Source of the DNA: Sphaerodactylus townsendi
Taxonomy: Eukaryota
Direction: 5' to 3'
NCBI RefSeq assembly: GCF_021028975.2
Contig: NC_059435.1
Location: 78,368,001-78,432,000 of the forward strand
Length of the DNA: 64,000 nucleotides
Position 1 is the first letter of the stretch. The number at the start of each line of letters is the position of its first letter. Under the pieces are notes generated by a model. It was not told the origin of the DNA. It did not search any database and saw only the letters and a list, made by a program, of their open reading frames with translations. Both the position numbers and the translations under genes were made by a program. Positions 4,401-62,036 of this stretch are shown here, piece after piece.

Positions 4401-6416
4401 ACATGTTTAGAATGAAGGAATTTGGGTCAATTTTATGAGGTCAGCGGGTGCAACATTATTTGTGTGATGATGTGATAAATGTGGTTGGGTTTGAGAGAGC
4501 TCATGAAGGCAGATATTTGACGTTAAAGTGTTTGATATGTAATGGCATGTATGGATTTGTTCATGATTACAGGCCACATCAATCACAAGGAAGCAATCAC
4601 AATCAGAGGATGATTTTAACGGAATTATGGGATCTGAACTGGACAATTAACAATTAATTTGTTAATTGAAGACTTCTCTCTAAAAACTTTCTAAAATCAT
4701 AGTCTCGGTTATGAGATGAATGGAGATTATATATTCCACTTGCCTCCACATGTCATATTCAAGAATATTTTTTTCTGTCTCTCCACCAGTAATAGAGTTA
4801 GTTTTGAAGTTATGATGCACGCATGCATGCCAAGTGGACGTAGTTTTATCTTAGAATGTAGGTGGCATTCCTTTTCAACAAAGGAAAATAGGGAATTGGC
4901 TGCTGCAGAGCGTGGGTCTGCCTGGCTTTGTTTGCTGACTTGGGGACCCTAAACTGGGTGGAAAGCCAGCATACAAAAGTTTTAAATGAATAAATAATAC
5001 ATCAAATGTGAGTGGATTTTGTGAATAGTGTTGCTCTGGATGTTGCATGGCCAGCAATTTGGGACTCATTTAAAGCCCCCATCAGATGTGTTTTTATTAA
5101 TTTTGTTAATTGATGTTTGTTTCATCTATACCTAAAACAGTTTACAGTGGAACCTTGGTTTTTGTTGGTAATCCGTCCGAAAAAAATCGATGAAAACCGA
5201 AACCGACGAAAACTGAGGCAAACATTTGCATAGGAATCAATGTAAATCCAATTAATTCATTCTAGACACTCCAAAATACATACCCAAAACACATTTATAG
5301 TGAATAAACATGGTGTTTAATACTGAAAACAATAACAAACAGGCACTGGATTATCTTCACAAACCAGTGAAGAAAGCCTACATTGCACAAAATAAACCAC
5401 TTGCCTTTAAAATCTGCAAAACAACCTTGCAACTGTGCACAAGCAGGCTCTGGGTGCTCACACATAAGAACATAAGAACAAACCAGCTGGATCAGACCAG
5501 AGCCCATCTAGTCCAGCTCTCTGCTACTCGCAGTGGCCCACCAGGTGCCTTGGGGAGCTCACATGCAGGATGTGAAAGCAATGGCCTTCTGCGGCTGTTG
5601 CTCCCGAGCACCTGGACTGCTAAGGCATTTGCAACCTCAGATCAAGGAGGATCAAGCTTGGTAGCCATAGATTGACTTCTCCTCCATCAATCTGTCCAAG
5701 CCCTTTTTAAAGCTATCCAGGTTAGTGGCCATCACCACCTCCTGTGGCAGCATATTCCACACACCAATCACACGTTATGTGAATAAGTGTTTCCTTTTAT
5801 TAGTCCTAATTCTTCCCCCCAGCATTTTCAATGGATGCCCCCTGGTTCTAGTATTGTGAGAAAGAGAGAAAAATTTCGAAACACGACGAGACACTGAGCA
5901 GGAAATTACGAGGTCACATGGCCGACGAGAGCACGCAAGATCACAGAGCCCGGAGAGCACACCGACGAAAACCGAGACAAATTTTTCACGGAAAAAATCA
6001 CCGAAAACTGAAACCGGCGAAAACCGAAGTCAACGAAAACCAAGGTTCCGCTGTATATATCTTTTCTCTCCTTCATTTTGTCTTCACAGCAGCCTTCATC
6101 AGCTGTCTTAACATTTTCTTGCGTCACCGTGTGGTAAAACTTGCCTGCTGCTGGTGCTGCTGCAGGCCTCCCAGGAATGAACTAAACATTTCCTTTCTTC
6201 ATGCCCCTGGACCAGGGCCTCAGGAGGAACTGGGAGGAGATCAACCAGGCCTTCCAGAGCATGTCTGTGTCCGTGGACACGATCCCCAGGAAGCTTCACC
6301 GGGAGAAGCTGGAGACGCAGATGAAGCAGCTGGAGCACGACATCGGCACCCTGGAGAAACACAAAGTCATCTACATAGACGGCCATCAGGACCCTTGTCC
6401 GAGATACTGGCCGTGA
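1403..6416 (+). CDS. Enkurin-like protein, 5 coding exons (1403-1479, 1908-2059, 2682-2908, 3992-4138, 6216-6416), 267 aa
   Basis: GT-AG junctions with matching phases (2,1,0,0); 804 nt total. The translation follows enkurin throughout: EETIYNLLP..EP..PPRY, KTMG.PK..PTPKDFL.KYSK, VP.RTDHP.MGIQS.K.FI..NAA, GL..KY.KK.DFG..P.Y, GLRRNWEE....FQS.SV..DTIP.K....LE..MKQLEHDIG..EKHK.IY. Orthology to ENKUR versus a paralogue is unresolved. Confidence 0.92.
3005..3146. mobile_element. Palindromic hAT-type MITE (enkurin-like intron 3)
   Basis: Foldback CAGGGGCGTCCAACTC...GAGTTGGACGCCCTTG; 8-bp TSD CGCTAAGC/AGCTAAGC. Confidence 0.85.
5145..6053. mobile_element. Non-autonomous Tc1/mariner (Tigger-like) DNA transposon with a nested CR1 fragment
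   Basis: TA flanks; TIRs CAGTGGAACCTTGGTTTT ... GAAAACCAAGGTTCCGCTG; repeated subterminal GAAAACCG motifs. Confidence 0.8.
5463..5876 (-). mobile_element. CR1-like LINE 3' fragment
   Basis: Starts with the reverse complement of a (TTCTTATG)n tail; minus strand encodes RTRGHPLKMLGGRIRTNKRKHLFT, the typical CR1 ORF2 C-terminus. Confidence 0.8.
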
Positions 6417-6492
6417 TCCAGACAGAATGAAGCACTTCCCCGTCCTTCTGTGTCCAAAGAGAGAGTGAAGCTGCTCCTGCATTCCTCTTATT

Positions 6493-6640
6493 CAGGGGTC
6501 TGCAACCTGCGGCTCTCCAGATGTTCATGGACTACAATTCCCATCAGCCCCTGCCAGCATGGCCAATTGGCCATGCTGGCAACGGCTGATGGGAATTGTA
6601 GTCCATGAACATCTGGAGAGCCGCAGGTTGCAGACCCCTG
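6493..6640. mobile_element. Palindromic hAT-type MITE in the predicted 3' UTR of the enkurin-like gene
   Basis: Near-perfect 148-bp palindrome centred on GGCCAATTGGCC; perfect TSD CTCTTATT. Confidence 0.92.
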
Positions 6641-7044
6641 CTCTTATTGGAAGCAATGAGACCTGAGTACTTAATTTTGAATGGCTCGTGCTTCACCCAA
6701 GTGGAAAAATGAAGCCATTTCCAAGAAGGAAAAGAAAAATAACCATTTATTTAACAATACAATAAGAATTATTGTATTCTGTGAGTTTTCTGTGAGCATT
6801 TTGGGTATTTTGTGAGTTTACTAATTTAATTTGAGTTTACTAATTTGTGAGTTTACTAAATTTTGTGAGTTGACTAACTATTGTGTTTGGTCCTGTGATC
6901 TGTTCTACTCCTGGTTGTGCCTCCTGAGAGTATGGGGGCCCCTCAAGCTGGGCCACCCTTGCTCAGAAGAAATGCACCCCCACCCAAGCTGTTCAGTTGT
7001 AAAGTTTTTTTAAATGTGCCTAACGTTCTGTACATTTTCCCTCA

Positions 7045-7050
7045 AATAAA
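7045..7050 (+). promoter_or_regulatory. Candidate polyadenylation signal of the enkurin-like gene
   Basis: AATAAA about 630 nt after the stop codon, followed by TG-rich sequence. Confidence 0.5.
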
Positions 7051-8039
7051 TTTTCACATGTGTTATTTGGACACTGTCCATTTATTTAGCATCCGTCTGC
7101 TATTTTTCATGCATGATGATGCCCAAAACAGAACACAACATTGTGATGAAAAAGGCAAAAGAGAATTTGACAGACAGACAGCTGGGAACCCACCCCGCCC
7201 GCCCGCCCGCCCCCAGGACAGAATTACATCTGTCTTTGTACAGATCTGCTTTGTATATTTGTTCACCACTTTTCTCCCCTAAAAGAACCAAAAATGGCTT
7301 ACAATGTTAATTTAAAATACAATTTAAACACACACAGGTAAAACAAAAGCAAAACAGTCAACTCTGCCTTGGTTGGGCCTTGAATTCAAATGACTCTTGG
7401 GCCCTTAGCAGTGCCCTGGATTATTCCTAAAGATGGGGAAGAAGTAAAAAAGAGATCCTCTTGGGATCTGGACTGCACAAGGAGCTGGAGTGCTCAGTGG
7501 CCAGCTGCTGCCATACTTTTTCTAAGTATTTTTGTGGATAAAATTGCTTGGATCCATCAGACTTGGATGCTACATAGGCAGCCCCAGGGTGAGACTGTCC
7601 CAGGGTGCTGGTTTGTCCAGTTGTACGAGATGCCTTTCAGCTGTGCAGTGTGAGGATACCAACAGGGAACCTTGAGACAGACCCCCCTGCTTGCATGACC
7701 TTTGCCCTTTCTGGCCCCATACATCTGCAAGAGAGGGGGTGGCATGGGTCCTAAAATACAACTTTTTGTCAAATAGTCTCTGATTGGTTTCACTGTGAAG
7801 GAGTGACTACTGTGCAGCAGGCCATAGGCCCTTTGCAGGGAAAACGAAGGAGGTCGCTACTGTGTTGAGTGCTCCTTGGGTTTTGTTGCTCCCTCCCTGC
7901 CTCCCCCCACAGGTGACACTCAGCTCTTCCTTGTACTTCCAGCTGACCCAAGAAGGCTGTGGAGACCCTGAGCCAGCGCCCGGAGGCAGTTCTGGGGTGG
8001 GTGCAGGCTAATAAACTGAAGCACACAACTATGTACAAT

Positions 8040-9540: not shown

Positions 9541-10364
9541 CTGTCATTGACTTCTGAGTGTCTTGCTTTGTCTGGCTTCCCTCAATGATCACTCCTTCCT
9601 ACCCAGTTTTAATTTATTTATGTATTTATTTGATTTGGTAAACCGCCCTACCCCCAAAGGACTCAGTTGACCTAATTGTGGGCTTTTAAGGTGTACTTAA
9701 GTTGGTTTATGTGCTTTTAAAGTGTATGTAAGTTTTGAGTTTACACATTGCTTTTATGACATGTTTTTATAATGTTTTCACTGCCAGTCACCTTTGTACC
9801 CCTGACTGGGCAGAGATGCGGAGCGCAACTTTTCCGTGCCTGAGCAGAGCACAGGAAGGCTTCTTCCTACACAACAAGAGCTGTTAGTTAGGGGTGACTT
9901 TGCAACACACCAGGGCTTGCCCTCTTCCTGCCTCTGGGTGGGCTGCTGGACAGAGAAAGGAACGGTTCTAGGTGCAGATCACCAGCTCCCAGTCTCTGGT
10001 CAAGGAAGCCGATCAGCCACCCGGCTTGACCACCTGGAGGATCCTCAATGGACGGGGGCTTCTGCACGAACGACCAGATCCCACCGACCGACTTTTCTTT
10101 CCCAGACTCCTGCATCGCTGCTCAGGGATGCTCTTTTGCCTCCTTCAGGGCTGCAGCAGCTGCAGCTGAATCCGCTGCTCCTGATCTTGTGGGGGGTGGG
10201 GGTGGGGTTTCCCACATAATTCTGGGGGGGGGGGCGCTATTTCTGTTCTGCTTTTTTGTGAGGGGTTAAGTACAGAATAGGAGGGAACGTTCTCTCTGCC
10301 GGCCCTCTTTATCCCGTCCATGAGTCTGTAAACCTCTATTTTAGTCCAGAGGGAGGAATTTTTA

Positions 10365-10490
10365 TACTTCCAGATGTTATGGACTTCATACTTCATTTGC
10401 TCTGCCAGCATGGCCAATTGGCCATGCTGGCAGGGGCTGATGGGAATTGTAGTCCATAACATCTGGAGTGCCAAAGGTTCGCCACCACTG
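10365..10490. mobile_element. Partial palindromic hAT-type MITE
   Basis: Right arm intact to GGTTCGCCACCACTG; left arm degraded. Confidence 0.8.
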
Positions 10491-11564
10491 CTCTATTCTC
10501 TCCTCCTCCTCGTCCCTTAGTGGTATCTTTTCTAAACTGGAAAAAAACCCAGACTCTCCAGCCTTTCCCATGGAAGAAGAGCCTCCAGCCCCCCCCCCCC
10601 CCCCCCGGCACCTTGGTTGCCCTCTTTGGTGCTTCTCCCAGCTCTGCCCAGTCCTTTTGGAGAGCTTTAGCAATGACCCCAAATTGTCCAGAAAGGTGAG
10701 AATATGAGCAGATCACAGAGGAGCCCAAACATCTACTTTGACAAATACAAAAGCGAGTCAGGAATTTTCTCCTTCCTGCCAGGGATGCAGAAACCTCTGT
10801 GCAGAGAAAGGGGGGGGGGCACCTTGCAGAATCCCTTAAGTGGAGTTGTGGGGAGCTAAACGGAGGCTTGCTGGTGAGTTCATCCCACGGATGGCTGCCC
10901 TTGTCCCAGCCTGTATTTGTTTATGAGCAACCCACAGCCCACGCTGGAAATGGTCTGGCTGCCAGCCCCCCCCCCCCCCATTTTGAGCTCCCCCACCTGC
11001 ACTTCTAAGGTCTACCCAGCAACTCGGAAATAACTTTTCTGCAACATGAGATGGGATTCTGGCCACCAGAAACATCAAATACACCAGACATTCGGCTCCA
11101 GATCTTCCCCTCGCAGGAGGGGTTCATGCAACTTTTTTGTGTGTGAAACAAAAACAGCAAACAGCAGCTCCCGAGGGTCATTTCAGTTCCAAAACCTGCC
11201 TCAGGGGGAGTCTGACGCCCCTCTCCCCTTATGCCAATCCAGTTCAGAGCCCCCCTCCTCCTGAAAATTAACTTAATAAAAACAACCAACTGCAGAACTT
11301 ACCCGCAGGGAGTCTATAGCTTTGGAGTACTTGGGCCTGAAATCTCCAGATGAAAACTGGTTCCAAAAGCAGGGGAGAAACACACTCGATACTGTGTGTC
11401 TGAACAAGCTCATCTGTCCACAAAAGGGAAGCATCTGCATTCAGCAGCAAGAATGGCCCACAACTCTTGTGCAGTTTGCACGACGGCCCAGGAGAGCCAC
11501 ATTGTGGGTCCCCGACTACCAAAGTCACTTTATGGCTACAGCGTCACTATATGTCTCACTATGT

Positions 11565-11860: not shown

Positions 11861-12192
11861 CTCCAAACTCTCTATTTTCCTTTGCTGAGATGACGACAGG
11901 CAGACCATAAGCTTCAAATCGTTTATTTGGAAGGGGTGCATTTTATAAAAGAAATAATATGAATAATGCAAACAAATGTGTATGTATAGCTGTAAACTGC
12001 ATCTACCAGTAGGTATTAAAGGTACAGTAACTATGAATATACAGCGGCTATTTTGAATATCAAGAGTAAAACAAAGGCCAGTAAAGCAAAATGGGGTCCA
12101 GTCAGAGACTGGAATTTCAGAAAACAGAAGACCCCCGTGGAGTGGGCCCGCTTTGGGGGCTGCCGCCCCGGAGCTGCTTAATCAACTAAGGA

Positions 12193-13563
12193 CTAAAACT
12201 TCACGTCCACCTGGGCTTCCTTGGCCAAGATCATTATTTCCGAGATCTTGACGACCGTTTTGGCGGCTGCATCCAACTCATAAAGCTAGCCGAAGTGATC
12301 TTTGGCGGCTCCTGCAGATATGATAGTCTTTGGCATCGTCCCACTCGGGAGACCTCTGGAAGGGCGTATCTACTGATCGGGATCTTTAGCTCCAGGATCC
12401 TCAGCCTGCCATGATGATGATGATGATCCCCTGTAGGCGATCATCAATGTCAAGCGGCGCATCAGGCCTCCAAAGATGTTGACCAGGATCGCCTCCACGG
12501 TGGTTTTGGAGGTGATGATTTTAAGGGCCTCAGTCACTTGCTGCACCGTTGCGCCGCCCCCCACGTTCAGAAAGTTGGCCGGCAGGCCCCCGTGGAATTG
12601 TATGATGTCCATGGTGGCCATGGCCAGCCCGGCCCCGTTCACCAGACAGCCGATCCTCCCCTCCAAGCCGACGTAGCTGAGATCTGCCTTGGCTGCATTC
12701 CTGTCTCTCTCGTCCTCCTGGGCCCAGTCCTGAAGCCGGAAGATTTCCTCCTGACGGTAGGCGGCGTTGCCGTCAAAGGTCATCTTGGCATCCAGGCACA
12801 CCACGGACCCCATCGAATCTTCTGCCAGGGGGTTGATTTCTACCATGGTGGCATCGTGTTCAATGAAGAAGTTGTACAGTTTAATCATGTGATCAGCGGC
12901 TTCACGGACCAGGTGAGTGGGGAACCCAATTTTCTCAGCGAACTGAAGGGCTTGCTCGCTTCGAAGGCCTTCCATGATGTCCACCGGCTCCTTTATGATG
13001 GCGTCAGGATCCTCGGCAGCCACCTCCTCAATGCTGACCCCGCCCTGAGAGCTGCCGATGAGGACCGGGCCCTGGAAGGACGGCTCCATCAGGATGGCGA
13101 AGTAGCACTCTCTCCTGGGGTAGATGCGCTTGCACACCAAGACCTGGCTGCAGATGCGGCCCTTCTTCCCCGTCTGCTGCGTGAAGAGCTTCTTCCCGAT
13201 CATGCGGGAGGAAACTTCTCTGGCTTCCTCCGCAGAAAAGACCACCTTCACCCCACCTTTGAAGCCGCCTTCAAAGACTCCCTTCCTCCGGTCACCAGCT
13301 AAAATCTGGGCCTTGACAATGAGGTCCTGGGAGCCAATTTTTTTGGCTGCTTTGTAAGCCTCTTCCGGCGTCTTTGCAAGGATCCCGTCCGGGACGGAGA
13401 TGCCCGCCTCCTTCAGCAGCCTCATGCTCAAGTATTCGTGCAGGGACAAGCTCCTTGCTTGCAGACGCGGCCCTGGCCACTGAGGGCGAGGAAGCAGCCC
13501 TGGACCCCTGCCCAGCACCGCGGCCCTCCCCCTCAGCCTCCCCACGGCCCGGCTGGAAAACAT
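12193..13563 (-). CDS. Intronless succinate-CoA ligase [ADP-forming] beta subunit-like retrogene (SUCLA2-like). ORF clean for about 370 codons; C-terminal ~80 codons disrupted by clustered 1-bp insertions
   Basis: Kozak GCTGCCATG and Arg-rich mitochondrial presequence, then [65 protein letters not shown]. Past the annotated stop (12370) the native tail is still readable as [28 protein letters not shown]. No introns; minus-strand AATAAA at 11922-11927. Confidence 0.88.
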
Positions 13564-31754: not shown

Positions 31755-31924
31755 NNNNNNNNNNNNNNNNNNNNNNNNNNNNNNNNNNNNNNNNNNNNNN
31801 NNNNNNNNNNNNNNNNNNNNNNNNNNNNNNNNNNNNNNNNNNNNNNNNNNNNNNNNNNNNNNNNNNNNNNNNNNNNNNNNNNNNNNNNNNNNNNNNNNNN
31901 NNNNNNNNNNNNNNNNNNNNNNNN
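31755..31924. other. Assembly gap (170 N)
   Basis: Run of N. Confidence 1.
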
Positions 31925-42400: not shown

Positions 42401-45400
42401 AGCTACGCCCCTGAGTGGCAGGGCCGGGCCTTGGTTTGCCATGTGACCCAAACGCACCCTGCAGGGTGGCAGGACTTCCATCAAAAAAGAACCCTTCCCA
42501 CCTCCCTCGAAGTCCCAAAGTGGAGGAAGGGGGGCACAAGGGGGTGCAGATCTCCCCCCCCCTCTAAGAGCAGGAAGAGGAGCCCTGGGGCAGAAAGAGA
42601 TCTGGAGGGGGCTTGGGGGCGAGGAGGAAGGGGGGATTCCCCCTCACAGCACTGCAGGGCTCCTCCCCTCCCCCCCAGACCCCTGCTGGGCCAGGATGTT
42701 TTGGGGACTGCAGAGAAGTCGGGGGGGGGACCCCGTGCAGAAGGAGAAGGCTGGATCTTGCACATAGGGGGCGTTTTTCTTGCCCCAACATCAGCCAAAG
42801 CCCCCGGGGGGCGGGGTTGTAAGTGTTGATATGACAATTGCTGACGTAAAGCAAACCCTCCCAAAGCCATTTCCCTTCCCAGCAATGGAAGTGGAGGGAG
42901 GGGGAATGACCCCCAGAGAGACTAGGCAGAGAAAACGCAAGGAAAGCAATGAGGGGGCAGCCCCACTGCCTCTGCGCTGACTTGGCAGCTTCAGCACCAG
43001 TGCAGAAACCCTTGTGGAAGAGGCCTCAGATGCGGGAAACACTGGGACAGGCCCAGCCCAGCCAGCCTCTCTGCCCCCCCCCCCCCGCCCCACGGCCTCA
43101 GCCAAAGCAACCTCTCAGTGGTTTGGGAGCAGGATGGTGTCACTCACCGGAAATGGGGGTCCTGCAGGCATCCATTCCCCCCTGCCCAGGGAGACCCAGG
43201 GCACAGGGCTCTCCCCCTTGCTCCATTTTGCAAATCAGCTCTGGTTTGGGAAGCATTTGGGACCCTGCAAGAGGGAGAACGAGAGGTTGGAATTTGCTAT
43301 CCCTGGAGCAGCATCTGGGCATGAGAGGACGCAGCCCCCCTGGCATCGCAGACAGCGGAAGCACCTGGGGCGCAAGAGACCTTTCCCAAGAGACCCAGCA
43401 CCCCCGCCTGGGCTGCTCCCGATACACCCTTGGGCAGCAGGAACCGCAGCCAGGAGCCCATTCACATTTTATCAAAAACCAACCATTTAACTTTTGCGTC
43501 AAACTGTCAGGGTCACGACCCTCACCTAAGCCTCTGTTGCATGATAAGTTTCTGTTTCCTAGTTCTCCCCATTCCCGCCACTGGGAAGGACCGCCCACTC
43601 CTACCTGTATATATACTGGAACGGAGGGCAAGAACCCTCAGTTCCAGCACCCTGTATCTTAGGGCAACACAAATCAATAAAGTTCGTTTCTTTGTTTCAA
43701 AGTCGACTTTGTCTGAGTGTGTCCAGCCTTACACAAACCCTCTTGTGGAAAACCCATTTGGCAGGAGGGGGCTGGTCTTGCTCTGGAAAAAAAGGAGTCT
43801 AAGGTCCTGATCCGACTGCCTTTTCCAAGGGCTTGTCCAGTGAAAAAGGCCCGTGCTTCTCCCATTCAGAGAAGGGACAGAGGCGGAGAGGATACAGCTT
43901 GCCTGTAAGGGGAAACTCAGTCCTGCCGAGGTGGGCTTCACTTCTTGGATGGGCTGGGAGGGGCCACCCTGGTTCAAGCTAAATTCCCACACTTTGGGAA
44001 GCAGCCACAGCCAGGACCTGGGTGGGGGCAAGCCGGCCCCTTCTCGGAGCCCCCAGAACACTCATCCACCCGCCCCCGTCCACGATTGTATTTTGAGCAC
44101 ATGGCATTGGCAGACCACTTTGGGCATTTGGGGTCTGGACAGCTTAAAATAAACGCAGGGTATGAAAAAGCCTTGGTGGTCTCCTGCAGCTCCAGCTGAC
44201 CCTCCTGTTGCCATGTCCAACATGCTCAGTCCAGCTGGCTCTTGGCCCCAAGAAGGTGCCCCAAAACTGCCCTGGACAGAGCTGCCGCCTTCAGAAACAA
44301 AACCCCACCCATCCGAACAGCCACAAGACCTTTTCCTTCCCAGCACACACACACATACACCCCCGCCCGCCAGCCCTCACCTAGCGAGGCCACCAGGTCA
44401 AAGTTGTCTTCCATGACCTCCTGGTACAGGTGCCTTTGCCAGGCTGTCAGCATCGCCCACTCCTCCAGGGAGAAATAGAGCACCACGTCCTCAAACGTCA
44501 CCACGACCTGGAAGAGAAAGAGGAGCCCCATCGGGCACAGGGTCCAGCATCGACCTCTGGGGGGGGGGGGAACCGTGGCCGATGCTCATGGGGCCCTAGA
44601 CCAGTGGTGGCGAACCTCTGGCACTCCAGATGTTATGGACTACAATTACCATCAGCCATGATGCCAGGGGCTGATGGGAATTGTAGTCCATAACATCTGG
44701 AGTGTCAGAGGTTCGCCACCATGGCCCTAGACCACCTTCCGACACGGCAGCCTCTGCCACAGTCCCTTCTCAGAGCGAGGCAGAACTCTGCCATGTAAAG
44801 AACCCGTTTTCAGTGCCAGGTCTGAGCACACGTGTGGCCACGACCCGTCCTTATGATCAGGGTGGATTTGATTGACACCCAATCAATTTAAATCATGATT
44901 TAATTCACTAGTCTGTAAGATTGGATTCAAATGTATACATGAGGATTCAATTTTGCTGGCATAACTTTGATAGGGTGTTGTGGGTTTTCTGGGTTGTATG
45001 GCTGTGTTCTGAAAAACCCACAAGACTCTTGGTGATTCCGGCCGTGAAAGCCTCCGACAATATATAATTTTGATATTCACAACCAGATGCACCTCTCTGT
45101 TCCGCATTGGCGCCTACTTCCGGGCACGGCAATTCAAGAAGGAGACTGACAAGCTGGAACGGGTCCAGAGGAGGGCCACCAGAATGGTAAATGGCTTTCT
45201 GCATGAGATGCATGATGGTCCACTTGGACTATTTTTACACAGATTTTTTTCTCACAAAAAGCATTTTATTTTAAAAAATCCAACTGTTTTGATCTGATGT
45301 TTGTCCCTCAGGCAAGTGGGGGCCCCTGCTGCTCCGGCCGCCTCCTTGCAAAGATGCAGCAGCAGCAGCAGCAGGAGGGCTACAAGGCGTCCGGTGGGGG

Positions 45401-50736: not shown

Positions 50737-51965
50737 ATGGCCTCCGGCTCCTGGCTGAGGGCGCTGGCGGCTCCCCTGCGGTGGGGTACGTGGTGGCAAC
50801 TCCCGGCGGGGGGTCTTTGGGGACGGGCTGGAGGCGGCGGAGAGGTTGATGCAGGGATGCAGCTGGCGGGGGCGGGGGAGAGGCCTGACAGCCTCCCCCC
50901 CCCCCCAATGCCTCCGCTCGGGGCCCCCCCTTGCATTAAGAGGCCGAATCCTCTGCCGGGGGGGCGGCCTGGACTGGTGAGTCCGCAGCAGCATCGCCAG
51001 GCCAGACGCGGGGAGGGGGCCGAGCCGAGCCTGCAGCCCAGGCGGGGAGGGGGCGTGCTTGGACTGGGCCGCCAGCAGTGGGTGGGTGCCTCAGCTGGCT
51101 CGTAGGCCGGATCTGGCCCCGCCCGGGGCATGGCCGACACCCCAAGGCAAGAGTTCACTGTCGGCAGCCTCCACCTCCTGACCTTGGGCTTCCTTGGAGG
51201 CCTCCCCTCCAACCACTAGGCAGGGTCTGTCCTGCTTTGCTTCTGAGATCTCACAAGATCAGGCTGGTCAGGGCAGCTACAGGCACCGATAGAAACACAC
51301 ACCGGCGTGGGGGGGGGGGGAGGTGCATCCGTAGCTGATTAGCAGGATGGCTAAAGAGAACCTCCACACTTCAAGGCAGTCACCCTCTGGATCCCAGAGC
51401 CAGGAAACAACATCAGGGGAAGGCCTTGGCCTCTCTGCCCTGCTGCTGGACCTCCAGAGGAACTGGTCGGCCACCGTGTGAGATGGGGTGCTGGGCTGGG
51501 TGGGGCCCCCTCTCTCCCCCCCAGTCTGATCCCACAGGGCTCTCCTTCTCTCCCTCCCTCCCTCCCACAGGCTGTTCTGCCGCCCTCCTGCGGCCTCCGG
51601 CGCTCACCTCAGCAGGCCCTGCAAGAGCTTCCATGGCCACCCTCAACCAAATGCACCGCTCGGGTCCCCGCAGGCGGCCCCCGCCCAAGCCCGGCCCCAC
51701 CGACGGCTGTCCGCAGCTGAAGGCCGTGGTGCTGAAGACGTTCACCCGCAAGCCCAAGAAGCCCAACTCGGCCAACCGGAAGTGCGCCCGCGTCCGCCTC
51801 AGCACCGGCAAGGAGGCCGTCTGCTTCATCCCTGGGGAGGGCCACAACCTGCAGGAGCACAGCATTGTGATGGTGGAGGGGGGCCGCACCCAGGACCTGC
51901 CCGGCGTCAAGCTGAAGGTGGTGCGCGGCAAGTACGACTGCGCCCACGTCATCAAGAAGAAGTGA
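50737..51965 (+). CDS. MRPS12: Mitochondrial ribosomal protein uS12m, exons 50737-50785 and 51571-51965, 147 aa
   Basis: [52 protein letters not shown]; phase-1 GT-AG intron after a 49-nt presequence exon; AATAAA at 52073-52078. Confidence 0.96.
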
Positions 51966-54019: not shown

Positions 54020-55667
54020 TTTAAATGTCCCTACTGGCTCTGGGTAAAAATTAAGGGGCAGAAAAACAACAGTGATCTCATTGTGGGGGTCTATTACAGA
54101 CCCCCAAGCCAGACTGAAGAGTTGGTTGATGCCTTCCTGGAGCAGATGTAATAGTAGTCATGGGAGATTTCAATTACCCAGATACTTGCTGGGAGTCAAA
54201 CTCTGCCAAGACTACCAGGTCCAACAGTTTCCTCACTTGCCTTGCAGACAGTTTCATGGTCCAGAAGGTGGATGAGGCAACAAGGGGACCGGCTATTTCA
54301 GATCTGCTCCTAACCAACGATAACCTGATTAATGGGGTGGAAGCGGCAGGGACCTTCGGTGGGGGTGGCCACATTCTCCTGGAGATTTTAGTAAGGCTTT
54401 TGACAAGGTGGCCCATGATATTCTTGCAAGTAAGCTGGAAAGATGTGGACTAGACAATGCATCTGTTTTCAGTGGTGGCGAACCTTTGGCACTCCAGATG
54501 TTATGGGCTACAATTCCCATCAGCCCCTGCTAGCATGGCCAATTGCTGGTGCAGGGGCTGATGGGAATTGTATTCCATGCTGACAGGGGCTGATGGGAAT
54601 TGTATTCCATAACATCTGGAGTGCCAAAGGTTTGCCACCACGGCATTAGATGGATTTGTAACTGGTTGGCTGGTTGAACCCAAAGGGTGCTCAGCAGTGG
54701 CTCATCCTCATCCTGGAGAGAAGTGACTAGTGGGGTGCCATAGGGTTCCTGGGCCCAGTGCTATTCAATATTTTTATCAACGACTTGGATGATGGAATAG
54801 AGGGCATCCTAATCAAATTTGCACGATATCAAATTAGGAGGGGTAGCTAATACCCTGGAGGACAGGGGCGGATTCAAAATGACCAGGACAGATTAGAGAG
54901 CTGGGCCAAAACAAACAAAATGGACGTCAATAGAGATAAATGTAAGATTCAACACTTAGGCAGAAAAAATGAAATGCACAGATATAGGATGGGTGACACC
55001 TGGCGTTTGACAACGGTGCACGTGAAAGGGATCCGGGAGTCTGAATATGAGTCAGCAGTGTGATATGGCAGCCAAGAAAGCCAATGCAATTCTGGGATGC
55101 ATCAATAATAGTGTCTAGATTGAGGGGAGTAATTGTACCACTATTCTGCATTGGTCAGACCTCATTTGGAATACTATGTCCAGTTCTGGGCACCACAATT
55201 CAAGAAGGACATTGACAAGCTGGAACGGGTCCAGAGGAGGGCGACCAAAATGGTCAAAGGTCTGGAATCCATGCCCTGCGAGGAGAGACTTAGGGAGCTG
55301 GGTGTGTTTAGTCTGGAGAAGAGAAGGTTAAGGGATTGACATAATAGTCATGTCTAAACATCTGAAGGGATGTCATGTCAAAGCGGGAGCAAGCTTGTTT
55401 TCTGCTGCTCCAGAGACCGGGACCAGGAGTAATGGATTCAAGAGATTCCACCTCAACATTAGGAAGAACTTTTTGACTGCCAGCGCTGTTAGACAGAGGG
55501 ATACGCTGGCTCGTAGAGTAGTGAAGTCCCCTTCTTTGGAGGTTTTTAAACAGAGTCTGAATGATCACGCGCTGGGAGTGCTTTGTGGATTCCTGCATGA
55601 CTGGGGGTTGGACTTGATGGCCCTTGGGGTCTCTTCAAACTCTATGATTCTATTCTATGATTCTGTG
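54020..55667 (+). mobile_element. Deleted CR1 LINE (endonuclease, RT and 3' end pieces)
   Basis: [59 protein letters not shown]; (ATTCTATG)n tail. Confidence 0.88.
54470..54643. mobile_element. hAT-type MITE nested in CR1
   Basis: Foldback with an internal duplication, interrupting CR1 sequence. Confidence 0.85.
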
Positions 55668-55961
55668 ACTCCTTGGATGAAGGAAAATGTTTATTGAAGA
55701 GACTCAGGATTAATGATTACGACCTGAAGCTAAGAAGATTTTATAAAAGGTTTATAAAAGGCCAAACAGTGAAACCGGTAAAAGGGGAACTTTGTGGAGG
55801 TGCGGACTGTTCCTTTCCCCTGTGAAGTGAGGCCAGAGAAGGGAGATGTAACCTGAGTAAACCCGTGCCCCCTCCCCCTCCCCTCCTTTTGAGTGAGGTC
55901 AGACCTAGGAAGGGGGGGGGTTATAGCACGCACACACATACAGGGTCTCCCCCCCCCCCGT

Positions 55962-57169
55962 TCACAGCTCCTCATCCTGCCGCCTCTTTTCGAAGAAAGC
56001 GCAGAACGCCTCGCGGATGCTGTGTGCCGCCCCAGTCTCTTCCGTGTCCGCAAAGCTGCCGGGGCTCTCGGAGGCTGCGGAGGGCAGGTCCGTGTAGTCC
56101 AGGCCCTCCTCCCACCCGTCTTGCATGGCCTCGTTGCGGCTCTCGCAGATGTTGTGCAGGATGCAGCAGGCGACGATCACGAGCGGGACGTTCTTCTCGG
56201 CCACGTCCAGGCGCTTGAGGAGGCACCGCCAGCGGCCTTTCAGCCTCTCAAAGGCGTAGGTCACGGCCATGCGGCACTTGCTCAAGACGGCGTTGAAGTG
56301 CTGCCTGGGCCCGCTGCTGCCGGCGTTGGGGTAGGGCTTCATCAGCCACGGCCTCAGGGGACAAGCGGGCCCTCCCAGCAGCACAGGGCGGATGGCTACC
56401 CCTTCGATCTCCCGGGTGGTCTGAGGACCAAAAGTCCCTTTCTCCATCCGCTCAAAGATGGGGGAGCCCCACGGCAGCCCAGAATCCTGCATCCCGCCGG
56501 ACCACCCCGTGTACACGTCCATGAACCGGCCAGCGCTGTCCACCAGGGCCTGCAGAACCATAGAGACCAAGCCTTTCCCGTTGATGTAGGCGGAGGCTCC
56601 GTGCGGGGAACACAGGATGGGAATGTGGGTCTCGTCCACCACCCCGAGGCAGTTGGGGAAGCCGACCCTTTCGAAGCCTTCCACGACGGCTCGCGCGTCT
56701 CCCAGCTGGACGACCTGCCGCAGCAGAACGTCATGAATCGCCTCGCACACCTCCATCACGATGACCGACGCGGTGGACACCCCGACGCCAAACTGGTTGG
56801 CGACAGATCTGTAGCTGTCCGAGGTGGCAAGCTTCCAGAGCGTCAGGGCGACGCGCTTGTCCACGGGGATGGCGGCGCGCATGTTGGTGTCCTCGCGCTG
56901 GAGCACAGGCCGCAGCTCCTCCACCAGCTCCAGCACCGCTTCCCGGGACATGCGGAAGTGCCGCACCCACGCGCCCTCGTCAGGCTGGCCGGCGAGCAGC
57001 TTGTCCCACCAGTCTGTCCTCCGGGTCTTGCTCCATACCGTCCGGTCGTTGGGGCGGTAGCTGGCCCCTAGCAGCAGCCGAGCCATCGCCGCCCGCTGCC
57101 TCCTGCGCCTCAAGCGGAGGTCACGCATACGCTTTGCCGAGGAGCTGGGCGCCTTCCCCGGGTGCCAGG
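55962..57169 (-). CDS. Harbinger/PIF transposase-derived (HARBI1-like, DDE_Tnp_4-type) exon
   Basis: [121 protein letters not shown]; strong acceptor with a CTGAC branch point. Confidence 0.93.
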
Positions 57170-57559
57170 CTGAGAGGCAGAAAGCAACCGAAGGGTCAGT
57201 CATTCAGCCACCTTTTTCTTTCAACATCCCCTTGCTGTGTGCGTTTCCCCCCGTAATCCGTTCTGCCCTTTTCCCACCTCATTTCTGAATCCAATGACTC
57301 TCCTCCCCGCCCAATAATAAACTTTTTTACAAATACATTTTGTGGCTTTACTTGGTAGAATTTACTCCTCTGGGATATTTCTCGACCCTCTGTGCTAGAC
57401 AGCACGGGAGCTACACAGCTAGTTATAAGGTATTTTCTAGGGTTTCTGTTCTGTCAGCTAGAAGGATATCTTCCCAGCAGTCTAGATGTTCTCAGGGGAT
57501 TCCTGAGTTGTGATGGCTGGTTACCAGGGTGCTTTCCAGGAAATCCTTGTTCTAAGGGA

Positions 57560-57607
<48 letters not shown>

Positions 57608-60600
57608 ACACACACACACACACCCCCCGCCTCCGGGCACATTCAGGTGTTCCTACTGTCTATCTATGCAGGACAAAAGGCAGCAAGGCAGACCGGCACA
57701 CCCAGGATCCCCAAAAGCAAACCTCCGAAGGAAGCAAACTTTCCCCCCTCCAACACAGTAAAAATGTGCAAGCAGCGTTGTGATGCGCTGCAGGAAGAAA
57801 CAAGCAGAGGCTTTTTCTGGAAGGAAATGGACGCATGCGTCAGAGGCCCTGGGAATTCGGTGCAGAGCCCTCGTTCCCAAGGAGGAAGGCCTGGGGGTGC
57901 AGAGTGAGGCTGCCCTGGGATCCCCCCTCCTTCTCCCCGCCCTGCCCCACACAAGCCTGAGCACAGCTGATGCCGCTTCTATCAAGGCCCGGCCACGACT
58001 CAGGCCTCCTGAGAGCCACTTACTGGGAGTGCTCTCCTGTGCTGCGGTGCTGGCCGGGCACTCGGGAGCCATGGAAGCGAGCTCTTGCCAGAGGCTGCTG
58101 GCAGCAGACAGCCCGTTGATGGGAGCCAGCAGCATTTCTTGGTGCTGGAGGCAGCTGGATACAGCAGAGGCATCTGGGTCTGGGAGCGGCAGCGGGAAGT
58201 CAGGGAGACCCACGGCCCAGGGGAGTGAGGATTCACTCTTCCTCGGCAGCTGGGAGCTGGGAGCCACCCTCACAGGGGCCGCCACGGGGTCTGGTTTGGG
58301 CAGAGGCCCCTTGCAATCTGGAGCGCTCCCCGCCTGGCTGTAATGCTCCTGGCCAGGTCCGGGGCCCTGGCAGCCGTGGAGCCCCAGGGTGCGGATGTAG
58401 CGCTCCTGGTCCGGGAGAGGCAGCTGGTGGAAGTCAGAGCTGCGGGAGGGCAGCATGAGGACGAACGGCGGCTCGCCAGGCAGCTGCTCCCTCCGGCTCC
58501 TGCCCTTCCGGCCCTTCTGCCTGGCGCGGCTGGCACAGACCTTGGGGATCACCAGTCCCCGGCTGGTCGTCAGGAAGCGGTCCAGGAGGGCGAAGAAGGG
58601 CATGGTCTGCCGCGCGCGGTTGGAGTGCAGGTGGCCGTCCTGGATCTCCTTGAAGCCCCTGCGCAGGTCTTTGGCCCGCTGCCGGCACTGCTCCAGGTTG
58701 CGCTGGAAGCCCAGCTTCCCCAGATTGTCCGACAGGCGCTTGTACTGCACCTCGTTGCGGTAGTTGTCGTAGAGCGCCGTCTGGACGTGGTCGTCCCCCC
58801 AGAGCTCCACAAAGGCTTTGGTCTCAGAGATCGTCCAGTGAGCCGCCCGCTGACGGACCTGGTCCAGGGCTTTCTGGTGGCTGCAGACACAAAAAGGGAG
58901 AGCAGGCCGCCCCCGGGCAGTTCAGACCACCTGGCCAGAGGAGCTCTGCTGTGTGTCCTGGGGAAGGGGCGATGGCTACGATGCCTCTTTGCCATGTGAT
59001 ACCAGGGGGTTGGAAGGGCAGCATTCCCCCCCCCCCCGCCTGCCCCTGCTCTATTTTGCAGCCAAGCGAGGGGTGGGGGCTGCAGCCATGGCCTCCTCTG
59101 GCACGGACAACCCTCCTCTGTTCATATAGAATTAAACTCCCCTCACACAGAACACACAGAGCAGTTTCCTTCTCAGATTTGTTCCCCAAGCTTGACGAGT
59201 GTTACAGCGTGACGTGTGGCCAGTCTGAGAAGCAGGCAAGCGGGACTGAAAGCCACCCCTCTGCCCCATTGCTCGTCTCAAACATCTTTTATTCAGAGGT
59301 AGACCTGCCTCTGGCTATGAAGGGTCCAATTACCTTCTATAGACCGACCCACCTGGATTTTCTACCCTGGGTCTACAAGCTAACCCCCGTGTACGCCTGT
59401 GGCTTAACCCTAACCCCCCCCCCCCCCCCCATACAACCCCTAAGAACCTAAGCACTAGCCTGCTGGATCAGACCAGAGTCCCTCTAGTCCAGCTCACTGC
59501 TACTCGCAGTGGCCCACCAGGTGCCTTTGGGAGCTCACAGGCAGGAGGTGAAAGCAATGGCCTTCTGCAGCTGCTGTTGCTCCCGAGCACCTGGTCTGCG
59601 AGTAATGTGCCCTGTCCTTCACCTTCAGACGCTTCTTAAAGACTCCCCGAAATCCCCCATCTGCAGCCCTGCCCCACTCCTCTCACCTGTAGTCCGCACC
59701 GTCCGGCTGGCCAAAGGGCAGGGAGCCGTGGAGGAGGGCGTCGGGCTTCTGGTCCACAGCGAGGGGCCTCCTGCAGCTGCAGCTGAGGCACTTGAAGAGC
59801 TTCCCGAGGGCCAGCTGCCCACGGATCCGCCCCGCCTCCTGCTCCTCGTAGGCAAAGCTGCTCCGGCAGTCGATGCAGGTGAAGAGCTGCTGCTGCTGCT
59901 GCTGCTGCTGCTCTGGCCGGTGAGAGTCCTGGTGGGCGGCCAGGTTTCCGGGTAGGATGCAAAGAACTTACGCCCACGCAGCTCGGTGGCAGGGCAGGCC
60001 TGCGCTTGCATGCCAAGAAGAGTGGGCCGCGACTGGAGCCGCGTGGGGAGGACGCAGCACCTCTCTCTCGGGGAAGCTCTGGCCGAAGTCCCGGCAGTCA
60101 TGGGGGGGTGCCCCCCTGGGGCTCCCCACCTTCTCTTCAGGCTGGATGCAAAACTTCGGGTTTTCTGGGGAAAGGACATGAACAACGGGGCAGTCAGTGG
60201 ACCCAGGATGGGCCGGAGGGAGAGCTGCGCCTGGACGTGACTTGCCAGGAACCCCCCCCCCCCGCTGTCCCCCCTGGGGCCCTGCAGTCTGCCCCACCCC
60301 TTGGTTCCATCCAGGGAATTTCTTTATGCTCCAGCATATGGCAAAGATGGCAGAGGAATCCCAGAGCTCCCAAGCAGTGGCTTTGCCCCAGTGGCCTTGC
60401 CAGCCCTTGGGTCTGACAACATGCCCCCCCCCCTGTCCCGACCTCTGATGCCCCATCTGACTGCCCTCCCCCCCCCGGTCATCTGCCCATCTGACACTCC
60501 CCAACATCTGTTTTGCCAGCCCTGGTTTTAATACTCTCAGGGGAGGAGTCAGCCTCAAGCAGGGTGCCCCGCCCACACCCCCGAGGCCCCCCCTTCCCTC

Positions 60601-62036
60601 TCTGCTGGGCTTCCACCGGTGATTCAGAGCTGCAGCCCCACAAGAACAGAAGGGAGGGGGTGGCAGACAGGGGGGGAATCTCTGAGCAGCCTGCCTGCGT
60701 TCTCCCACTGCCTGACAGGTTACAGCTGTTGCCGCCTCAAGGAAGAACAGCCTGCGGGTGGGGTGGGGTGGGGGGACTCTGGCATCAGCCTCGCCACAAG
60801 CCCCCAGCCTCACTCACCGGGGCAGGGGCCAGCAGGAGACCCCATCCGTGGTCCCTTGGAGTCCGTCTTCTTGCCGGCGGGCTCTGCTGTTCCTGGCTGA
60901 GCCCCCGCCTCCTCCGCCCGTGCAGCAGAGTCCCTGGAAACTGTTCCACACAAAGGAGGGGGGGGCTATCAGGGAGGAAGCGAAGCCGGCCCTTGAGCAC
61001 AACGCATGACACCCCTCCCCCCAAGAAAGCCTCTGTGGTCAAGGCTGGGACTCTGGTGATGCGTATGTAAGAGGAAGGGATTGGGGGGGGGGGGGGTTGG
61101 TGGTTGCCAGAGGGCCCCTCCCCCCGGTTGCTGTGACCTGTTTACCCATAAGTTGTCTTAGCCATATCAAGGAACAAGGTGTGGAAATGAAAGGTGGGCT
61201 GGCTCCTCTAGGCCAGTGGTGGCGAACCTTTGGCACTCCAGTTGTTGTGGACTACAATTCCCATCAGCCCCTGCCAGCATGGCCAATTGGCCATGCTGGA
61301 AGGGGCTGATGGGAATTGTAGTCCATAACATCTGGAGTGCCAAAGGTTTGCCACCACGGCTCTAGGCCAATCGCTGCTGGGTCCACAGAGCAGCCAGCCC
61401 ACAGGAAGGGACCCCCCCGCCCCTCCCCCAAGTCCAGAGGGGCTGCTCAGGAGGCAGCATTCCAACCGGCCGCCCTCAGCAACTGCCCCTGCGCCTCCCA
61501 AGGCGATGCAGGACCACGGAAGCTTCACTTACCACGGCGGTGGGCGAGGTTTTGGGGGGCAGCTTTCCTCTCCCTCCGCAGAAACCTCTTGGAAGGAGGG
61601 GCCTCCCCTCGAGCTATCCGGCCCAGGACCTCCGGCTGGTCATCACGCTCGGATACTGTTCAAGGGTGAGAGTGAAGGAAATTCAGCAGAGGGTGGAGAG
61701 GGTGCCCGTCCCTCCCCCTAGATTTAGCAGGAAAGAGGGGAAGAAGAGACCCCGCAGGAGCAGCAGAGGGGTCTCTCCCACCAGACGAGGCCAGGGCCAG
61801 AGCGGAAGGAGGAAGCAAGTCTTTGCCCTCCTGCTCCCCAAGGAACCGCCCAACCCCGGCCCAAACGCCACCTGGCCCAGCAGGGACCCAGCCAGGACTC
61901 TCCCCGCCCCCTCACCTAGGGAGCCCACCAGGGTGTGAGTCTCCTTCATCACATCCCAGTAAAGGGCCTTCTGCCAAGCGGTCAGCTCCGCCCACTCCTC
62001 TGGGGAGAAATAGACGGCCACGTCCTCAAACGTCAC
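55962..62036 (-). CDS. Predicted KRAB-C2H2-Myb/SANT-Harbinger DDE fusion gene; exons 61916-62036, 61533-61655, 60818-60940, 59687-60164, 58024-58880, 55962-57169; start exon not identified
   Basis: Six exons, all GT-AG, phases 1,1,1,2,1 compatible, 2910 nt in total. One in-frame TAA (59968-59970) lies inside an indel-damaged finger. Minus-strand AATAAA at 55690-55695. Confidence 0.75.
57563..57622. repeat. (CT)n(CA)n microsatellite
   Basis: Visible directly in the sequence. Confidence 0.95.
58024..58880 (-). CDS. Myb/SANT-like (trihelix, Harbinger ORF1-type) DNA-binding domain exon
   Basis: [24 protein letters not shown]....RN...Y..LS..L...[21 protein letters not shown]....G......[14 protein letters not shown], followed by a Pro/Ser-rich linker. 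Confidence 0.9.
59687..60164 (-). CDS. Degenerate C2H2 finger and polyQ exon of the fusion gene
   Basis: [10 protein letters not shown]; a damaged PCTECGK.F...[10 protein letters not shown]; (CAG)8 encoding Q8; [10 protein letters not shown]; FKCLSC; ends GADY-AG|GTGAG (phase 2). Confidence 0.7.
61214..61359. mobile_element. Palindromic hAT-type MITE
   Basis: Full foldback; perfect TSD CTCTAGGC. Confidence 0.9.
61533..62036 (-). CDS. KRAB-A (61916-62036) and KRAB-B-like (61533-61655) exons
   Basis: [33 protein letters not shown]; [14 protein letters not shown]. Confidence 0.88.

Follow-up and report, generated by a model that had tools for sequence, protein, structure and literature searches.

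A squamate-wide gene that appears to join both Harbinger transposon proteins to a KRAB domain in one chain

In the genome of Sphaerodactylus townsendi we analysed a stretch of 64,000 nucleotides (nt), called the window below (contig NC_059435.1, positions 78,368,001-78,432,000 of the forward strand), in which a gene on the minus strand combines a KRAB domain with counterparts of the two proteins of a Harbinger transposon. Between positions 62036 and 55962 of the window this gene comprises six exons with AG acceptors, GT donors and compatible phases. An earlier reading of the bare letters (the original prediction) had proposed exactly these exons, and on re-reading their canonical splice sites and matching phases were borne out, while the count of six proved incomplete, as at least two further coding exons lie upstream within the window. 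The parts of the gene are given below in the order of the reading frame; a slash within a splice site marks the exon boundary, and P0289 is the protein annotated for this gene.

63998 to ~63882, minus strand: upstream coding exon, approximately residues 44-82 of P0289, known from the annotation only; the would-be donor is non-canonical (G/gc)
62953-62796, minus strand: N-terminal coding exon, acceptor ag/GC, donor Q/gtgagc, placed by tblastn of P0289 and peptide mapping
62036-61916, minus strand: KRAB-A exon, acceptor cag/GTG, donor G/gtgagg, phase 0 to 1
61655-61533, minus strand: KRAB-B-like exon, phase 1 to 1, recognised from its frame and splice sites
60940-60818, minus strand: spacer exon of low complexity, phase 1 to 1
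60164-59687, minus strand: zinc-finger (relic) exon, phase 1 to 2
58880-58024, minus strand: Harbinger Myb/SANT-like exon, phase 2 to 1
57169-55962, minus strand: Harbinger transposase (DDE) exon with HTH_Tnp_4 and DDE_Tnp_4, TGA stop at 55964-55962
55961-55676, minus strand: 3' untranslated region with AATAAA at 55695-55690, ~265 nt past the stop

The annotation of this genome contains a 1037-residue fused protein (P0289), and when it was mapped on the window by tblastn, five of the eight pieces were identical (100%) and the Myb exon reached 99.7%, the three upstream matches being lower from overrunning the exons. The exons of the window were searched singly and not joined, and the full-length proteins (P0005, P0289 and others) are database entries. 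The KRAB-A exon, at the N-terminal side of the protein, matches Pfam KRAB at 5e-20 over profile positions 2-42 of 42 and retains the DV, EEW and LY.DVM.E positions, and the KRAB-B-like and spacer exons are identical (100%) to residues 175-215 and 216-256 of P0289, respectively. In the zinc-finger exon, finger 2 is followed by a (CAG)n poly-Gln tract at ~59877-59920 and then by a conserved CxxC…CxxC segment (FTCIDC…EEQEAGRI…LFKCLSCSC…DQKPD). The Myb exon consists of a Myb_DNA-bind_4 domain in its first ~128 codons (Pfam 9e-9 on the open reading frame, ORF, and 2.4e-13 in P0289), a fast-evolving linker and a conserved motif close to its end, and the DDE exon matches DDE_Tnp_4 at 1e-20 over profile positions 1-158 of 158 and HTH_Tnp_4 at 7e-5. 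A Pfam scan, proposed earlier as a check, thus recovered KRAB, Myb_DNA-bind_4 and DDE_Tnp_4 but not zf-C2H2, for which there was no match in the ORFs of the window or in P0289. Both junctions quoted in the original prediction were correct, since GADY-AG/C-HQKALDQ (59687/58880) gives the codon AGC (Ser) and QESTP-A/CC-WHPGK (58024/57169) the codon ACC (Thr); the G+C content is ~0.65 and similar to that of the surroundings, in keeping with the host-like richness noticed then, and the polyadenylation signal expected past the stop is the AATAAA at 55695.

The upstream exon at 62953-62796 encodes a conserved N-terminal region (…LWDCSVAPGAWRGQCTWQCWHQRVLEHLEQE…; …LWDC…PGAW.G.CTWQCW..RVLE.L…), which has no Pfam match; the proteins of Gekko, Eublepharis and Phrynocephalus share this motif. 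Residues 1-43 of P0289, and with them the 5' end of the gene, fall beyond position 64000, outside the window. The stretch compared with the contigs of sequencing runs, described next, begins downstream of this exon and of the one at 63998 to ~63882.

Four sequencing runs of one study (X1-X4) contain the stretch, none of them recorded as RNA. Runs X1-X3 are DNA-like, with uniform depth over exons and introns alike and enormous depth at two intronic repeats, and X4 is RNA-like, with a depth of 170-191 on exons vs. 0-18 in introns, an approximately tenfold contrast. One X4 contig (record 27, 1703 nt) consists of 62040-61916, 246 nt, 60164-59687 and 58880-58024, plus 30 nt. Its 246 nt are the two 123-nt exons (KRAB-B-like and spacer), which the bin depths fit (123/199 x 190.9 = 118, observed 118), and the spacer exon is assigned to this contig by a T>C difference at 60857 with a depth of 190.9 together with the X4 depth; the Myb exon occupies its positions 31-887. 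The depth of the bin 57097-57295 is 105.5 = (73 x 170.4 + 156 x 18.1 + 30 x 190.9)/199, the intron contig having a depth of 18 vs. 170-191 for the exons, and this assigns the extra 30 nt of record 27 to 57140-57169, at the start of the DDE exon. A second X4 contig (record 25, 1494 nt) starts exactly at 57169, has 670 nt on 57169-56500 and spans the DDE exon to ~55676, that is, ~19 nt past the start of the AATAAA hexamer. All junctions from KRAB-A through DDE are therefore seen in RNA-derived (de Bruijn) contigs of X4, including the two that had been singled out for checking, 59687/58880 and, via the 30-nt depth arithmetic, 58024/57169. These data support the splicing of the KRAB, Myb-like and DDE parts into one mRNA, and the X4 contig, the exon phases and the mapping of P0289 agree in placing host and transposase domains in one frame joined by splicing, as in a fusion gene.

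A HMMER search with the DDE exon retrieved a Phrynocephalus protein of 1125 residues that shares 84% identity in the DDE part and contains KRAB, Myb_DNA-bind_4 and DDE_Tnp_4. A second search, with this protein as query, yielded further full-length models, P0289 among them, and about a dozen squamates besides this one have the fusion annotated as a single protein. Annotated orthologues with these three domains come from Gekko, Eublepharis, Tiliqua, Hemicordylus, Podarcis, Zootoca, Rhineura, Sceloporus, Phrynocephalus and Varanus, and the RefSeq models of the KRAB-(C2H2)-Myb-DDE type extend over geckos, skinks, lacertids, cordylids, amphisbaenians, iguanians and Varanus. The Pogona isoform retrieved starts within KRAB-A and shows Myb and DDE only, and a 442-residue DDE-only Ensembl model of Anolis carolinensis belongs to the orthologue clade. 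In Gekko and Hemicordylus the gene is flanked by an ABC-transporter gene on one side and, in convergent orientation, by MRPS12 on the other; on a Logan contig of another species (L001), MRPS12 comes after the finger, Myb and DDE exons. The window shows the same conserved synteny marker: its plus strand carries an MRPS12 coding exon (51633-51965) that shares 82% identity with the L001 copy and converges on the fusion gene; the search for syntenic orthologues beside MRPS12 in other squamates, suggested by the original prediction, was thus successful in Gekko, Hemicordylus and L001. Every orthologue seen, geckos included, has its Myb and DDE exons in one orientation with 850 bp between them, and most loci checked preserve the splice acceptors of the two exons. 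The Myb-DDE unit has no flanking inverted repeats, which agrees with the lack of terminal inverted repeats (TIRs) remarked on earlier, and the DNA depth over the two exons equals that of the single-copy flanks, so that there is no sign of the many TIR-flanked copies that would have spoken for a mobile element. The locus is immobile: single copy, syntenic and without TIRs. Since geckos and all the other lineages share it, the fusion predates the crown-squamate split, which established dating puts at ~200 My.

We compared substitution rates pairwise by the method of Nei and Gojobori (NG86) among the window, Gekko, Hemicordylus and three Logan species. The ratio of nonsynonymous to synonymous rates (dN/dS) was 0.06-0.15 for the DDE exon (~400 codons, five species), with dS of 0.5-1.1 and dN of only 0.06-0.08, ~0.10 for KRAB-A against Gekko and Hemicordylus, and 0.18 (median) for the Myb domain; it rose to 0.34-0.50 in the conserved half of the finger exon and to 0.54 in the linker after the Myb domain. 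KRAB, Myb and DDE are under purifying selection, and the per-exon check proposed at the outset gave values far from neutral for the DDE exon, KRAB-A and the Myb domain. In five aligned orthologues (among them the window, Gekko, Hemicordylus and L001), the catalytic triad reads D-G-T/S, vs. D-D-E in multi-copy turtle Harbingers: the first Asp persists (VVDETH), Gly takes the place of the second (LLGGPACPL) and Thr or Ser that of the Glu (AVTYAFERL), and the full-length orthologue proteins show the same motifs. In this species the positions are D-G-T. The loss of two catalytic residues together with the low dN/dS indicates a transposase that is catalytically dead yet constrained. ALP1, too, has lost catalytic residues. 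Such conservation without catalysis is what one would expect of a domesticated protein whose role is non-catalytic. Of the features of an active transposase, the DDE_Tnp_4 fold and the helix-turn-helix (HTH) are present, while the intact D-D-E, the TIRs and multiple copies are lacking. An active or recently dead transposon copy was rejected as an explanation, given the single copy, the lack of TIRs, the synteny and the low dN/dS. We hold, with good confidence, that the locus is a domesticated KRAB-(C2H2)-Myb-transposase gene, squamate-wide and expressed as one mRNA, which came into being no later than the common ancestor of today's squamates.

In the zinc-finger exon the assembly has an in-frame TAA at 59970-59968, inside finger 2, and the annotation of this genome begins the exon at 59966, the acceptor having been moved there because the TAA would break the frame. 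A contig of X4, which comes from another animal of the same study, contains the whole exon as 445 nt vs. 478 in the assembly, a net difference of 33 nt and a multiple of three; the comparison gives 27 insertion-deletion rows, and the 12 that are listed are all omissions of 1-2 nt, including 59968 and 59970. The DNA runs X1-X3 have no contig over 59877-60233, and therefore short reads of their kind could not have served to correct this stretch. Compared with Eublepharis and Phrynocephalus, the reading of the window hops between frames in the doubtful stretch (…LPC… in one frame, …GRKFFAS… in another). When the 12 listed differences were applied to a 136-nt stretch, the TAA was removed and no single clean frame resulted, gap placement being fuzzy and 15 of the 27 differences falling outside the listing. 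Hence, window positions 59877-60233 probably contain an assembly error, namely unpolished insertions in a G+C-rich stretch uncovered by short reads; such an error would create a false stop codon and a shifted acceptor and so distort the gene model of this genome. The original prediction had counted this TAA, if confirmed, among several points that would go against it; the TAA is present in the assembly and absent from the X4 contig, at a place not covered by the contigs of X1-X3.

Finger 2 is frame-scrambled in the assembly. Finger 1 reads C-x2-F (Cys to Phe) and lies outside the doubtful stretch, with no X4 difference listed there, so that the fingers are relics in this species independently of the assembly error, each of the two C2H2 fingers being short of one cysteine. 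The orthologues of Eublepharis, Podarcis and Rhineura have just two intact C2H2 fingers, the Gekko model lacks the finger exon, and Varanus lacks a Pfam finger. The gene shares with KRAB zinc-finger proteins a KRAB A (with B) on the N-terminal side and lacks their functional C2H2 array. The earlier designation as a KRAB-zinc-finger gene therefore holds for its KRAB part, while the zinc-finger part is a two-finger relic here and not a working array.

Several points weigh against the reading of the locus as one domesticated fusion gene throughout squamates. If the TAA is real in the reference animal, at a spot without a DNA contig, it would uncouple KRAB from Myb-DDE in that allele. The RNA support consists of de Bruijn contigs from a single run of unrecorded kind, in which each junction is supported rather than one full-length molecule, and internal starts or other isoforms are possible, as the Gekko model skips the finger exon and one Pogona isoform is without KRAB-A. 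Moreover, no snake orthologue was present among the protein-search matches, which may reflect a loss or a limit of the search. The first of these points leads to the reading that the gene is broken in this species, with the KRAB part ending at a real TAA and the Myb-DDE part produced from internal initiation or not at all. The stop in the assembly, the acceptor that annotators shifted to 59966 to hold the frame, the degeneracy of both fingers in a fast-evolving exon (dN/dS 0.34-0.50) and the Gekko model without that exon altogether would fit it, but we judge it improbable, given that the X4 contig spans the exon with 33 nt fewer (a multiple of three) and omits 59968 and 59970, that the X1-X3 DNA contigs are absent exactly over 59877-60233, where the window hops frames relative to its orthologues, and that further downstream the Myb and DDE exons are undamaged and under strong constraint. 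Far less credible still is a decayed, functionless Harbinger insertion stitched to a neighbouring KRAB gene by gene predictors or read-through. The lost catalytic residues and the fast evolution of the linker and finger parts are what such decay would leave, but intact frames of 401 and 285 codons have been retained, at one syntenic site, in lineages from geckos to cordylids, the DDE exon shows a dS of 0.5-1.1 against a dN of 0.06-0.08, the Myb and DDE acceptors are conserved in most loci checked, and the X4 depth on exons is ~10x that in introns. This reading is already contradicted.

Within the preferred reading, a domesticated fusion gene, the route of its assembly can be considered from the position of the exons and the relatives of its parts. 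The Myb exon begins ~12 residues ahead of the Myb domain and the DDE exon ~38 residues ahead of the first conserved transposase motif; both acceptors are thus near the presumed ORF starts, which is the pattern described for transposase capture. On this route, exons of a KRAB-ZNF gene would have been joined to splice acceptors situated close to where the Harbinger ORFs begin. A different route, in two steps or of mixed origin, would have the Myb exon already in the host KRAB-ZNF gene (as in ZSCAN20/ZSCAN29) or derived from another element, and the transposase captured later. The single turtle (Chelydra) Harbinger examined, L006, has an intact D-D-E transposase at 6001-7284 on the plus strand and a convergent Myb-like ORF at 9879-10571 on the minus strand, which are 49% and 29% (E 1e-12) identical to the corresponding parts of the gene, and this arrangement and disparity would suit the two-step route, as would the existence of vertebrate genes with the Harbinger Myb part only (MSANTD family, PMC9392472). 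Yet Myb-like ORFs generally evolve faster than transposases, which makes 29% vs. 49% uninformative, no orthologue with only one of Myb and DDE was found, the two exons keep their 850-bp spacing and common orientation in every orthologue seen, and the Myb exon starts so close to its domain that the acceptor would be near the ancestral ORF start. Hence, we regard a two-step origin as possible but rather doubtful. The original prediction was nevertheless too firm on the capture of a whole Harbinger element: this may have been a single step, but the one related turtle element examined has convergent and not tandem ORFs.

In a tree of the DDE part, 13 orthologues form one clade with a long stem and full support by the Shimodaira-Hasegawa-like approximate likelihood ratio test (SH-aLRT 100), apart from KHARBID3 (Python LOC103055168, which is P0015) and from SCAN-KRAB-DDE genes; a common origin with either was rejected on the strength of these separate clades. 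As its sister, the orthologue clade has an 'ALP1-like' gene that stands alone and occurs squamate-wide (SH-aLRT 93; long branches call for caution here). The L006 turtle Harbinger belongs to a protein cluster of 80 members, as would fit a family active until recently.

On the preferred reading the gene yields one spliced mRNA encoding, in order, the N-terminal region, KRAB A and B, the spacer, two C2H2 fingers, a Myb/SANT-like protein and a nearly whole Harbinger transposase. From this composition we infer a sequence-specific transcriptional repressor, which would bind DNA via its Myb/SANT-like domain and the transposase HTH (and the fingers where they are intact), and whose KRAB domain would recruit TRIM28/KAP1; the sequence basis for this predicted role of KRAB is the full-length KRAB-A match with its retained positions. 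Guidance of TRIM28 to Harbinger TIR-like sites, as the original prediction envisaged, would be conjectural. The dead RNase-H-like transposase core may have been kept as a platform for protein-protein interaction or oligomerisation, as in HARBI1 or plant ALP1. Inside the fast linker of the Myb exon, the motif P(I/V)NGLSxASxLWxE(L/M/I)xS (58090-58040, minus strand) is conserved in six of six aligned species and is a candidate interaction motif.

To our knowledge, Harbinger is alone among DNA-transposon superfamilies in requiring two proteins, and every Harbinger domestication we know of concerns either two genes (HARBI1/NAIF1, ALP1/ALP2, HDP1/HDP2) or one protein only. The present gene resembles these pairs in that both Harbinger proteins have been domesticated and kept, and differs from them in that HARBI1/NAIF1, ALP1/ALP2 and HDP1/HDP2 are separate genes whose products associate non-covalently, whereas here they are exons of one gene, forming one polypeptide with KRAB in front. 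The Myb_DNA-bind_4 domain typical of the Myb partner is present, but as an internal exon instead of a gene separate from the transposase. Co-domestication was described for HDP1/HDP2 (PMC5339849). Like ZSCAN20/ZSCAN29 and the MSANTD family, the gene is a host gene with a Harbinger-derived Myb_DNA-bind_4 domain (PMC9392472), although those genes contain the Myb part only, without the Harbinger transposase; ZSCAN29 is entered with Myb_DNA-bind_4 in the table of Cosby et al. (bioRxiv 10.1101/2020.05.07.082677). With KRABINER, POGK, ZNF862, PGBD1 and KRBA2 it shares the mechanism of gene birth and a presumed KRAB repression aimed by the DNA-binding domain of a transposase, but these come from other superfamilies (mariner/pogo, hAT, piggyBac, Ginger), each of which encodes a single protein.

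The closest published class comprises the seven Harbinger-derived fusions, four with KRAB (KHARBID1-4), that were catalogued by Cosby et al. (bioRxiv 10.1101/2020.05.07.082677, Suppl. Table 3). As in these reptile genes, splicing links KRAB (or SCAN) to a DDE_Tnp_4 transposase of the PIF/Harbinger type, with 'fusion only' status and low dN/dS. Unlike them, the present gene includes Myb_DNA-bind_4, which none of the seven Harbinger entries in the table lists, and the orthologue IDs (Pogona 110082590, Gekko 107118608, Podarcis 114607153 and others; six tried) are absent from the tables. KHARBID1, with a dN/dS of 0.08, was dated to Toxicofera (bioRxiv 10.1101/2020.05.07.082677), although the screen took in Gekko, and the gene described here is present in geckos; moreover, its Pogona orthologue is LOC110082590, whereas the KHARBID1 IDs are Pogona 110070590 and Anolis 103280956. 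Compared by gene IDs and catalogue description, identity with KHARBID1 is thus unlikely. KHARBID3 is only ~44% identical and belongs to a different clade. Full-text searches of the literature gave no description of a KRAB-Myb-DDE chain, and the MSANTD paper (PMC9392472) makes no mention of such a fusion. The novelty suggested by the original prediction is accordingly narrower than it seemed: the KRAB-Harbinger class has been catalogued, and the gene itself stands in RefSeq as 'uncharacterized protein LOC...', while the architecture with the Myb partner in the same chain appears to be undescribed. On balance, we are inclined to see in it the first recognised covalent fusion of both Harbinger proteins with KRAB, kept for ~200 My since the squamate ancestor and missing from the published fusion catalogue. 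If true, it would represent a natural 'single-chain' version of the HARBI1-NAIF1 or ALP1-ALP2 complex. Such a gene bears on why the transposase core persists after domestication and on whether the Myb-transposase partnership itself is the selected unit, and it adds a squamate-wide member to the KRAB class of transposase capture.

The 'ALP1-like' gene that is sister in the DDE tree is likewise Harbinger-derived and found across squamates (Thamnophis, Pogona, Anolis sagrei LOC132765152; 483-488 residues), with ~50% identity to the DDE part, and differs in being stand-alone, without KRAB or Myb, and in keeping the second catalytic Asp. Among the matches listed (P0007, P0159-P0167, P0169), it measures 468-515 residues and occurs in geckos, snakes, lacertids, iguanians and Varanus; its clade has short internal branches, and its catalytic Glu has been replaced. 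The gene has the look of one more domesticated transposase.

Elsewhere in the window, a second KRAB-A-like exon lies at 44382-44501 on the minus strand, on the far side of MRPS12; it is 65% identical to the KRAB-A of the fusion gene and suggests another KRAB gene in the window. Within the introns of the fusion gene, interspersed repeats at 59286-59683 and 61077-61474 reach 10^5-10^6 in the DNA runs when contig depths are summed, vs. ~20-80 in their flanks; the two look like very high-copy elements of the short interspersed (SINE-like) type, and the many short 'joints' there are repeat artefacts. A (GA)n microsatellite occupies 57554-57636 in the intron between Myb and DDE, where contigs break, and a gap or masked stretch of 170 N is found at 31755-31924. 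Beyond the poly(A) site of the gene, a fragment at 55133-55340 on the plus strand resembles the C-terminal part of the reverse-transcriptase ORF of a long interspersed element (LINE), and a similar fragment is present in the turtle locus L006 at 11904-12266.

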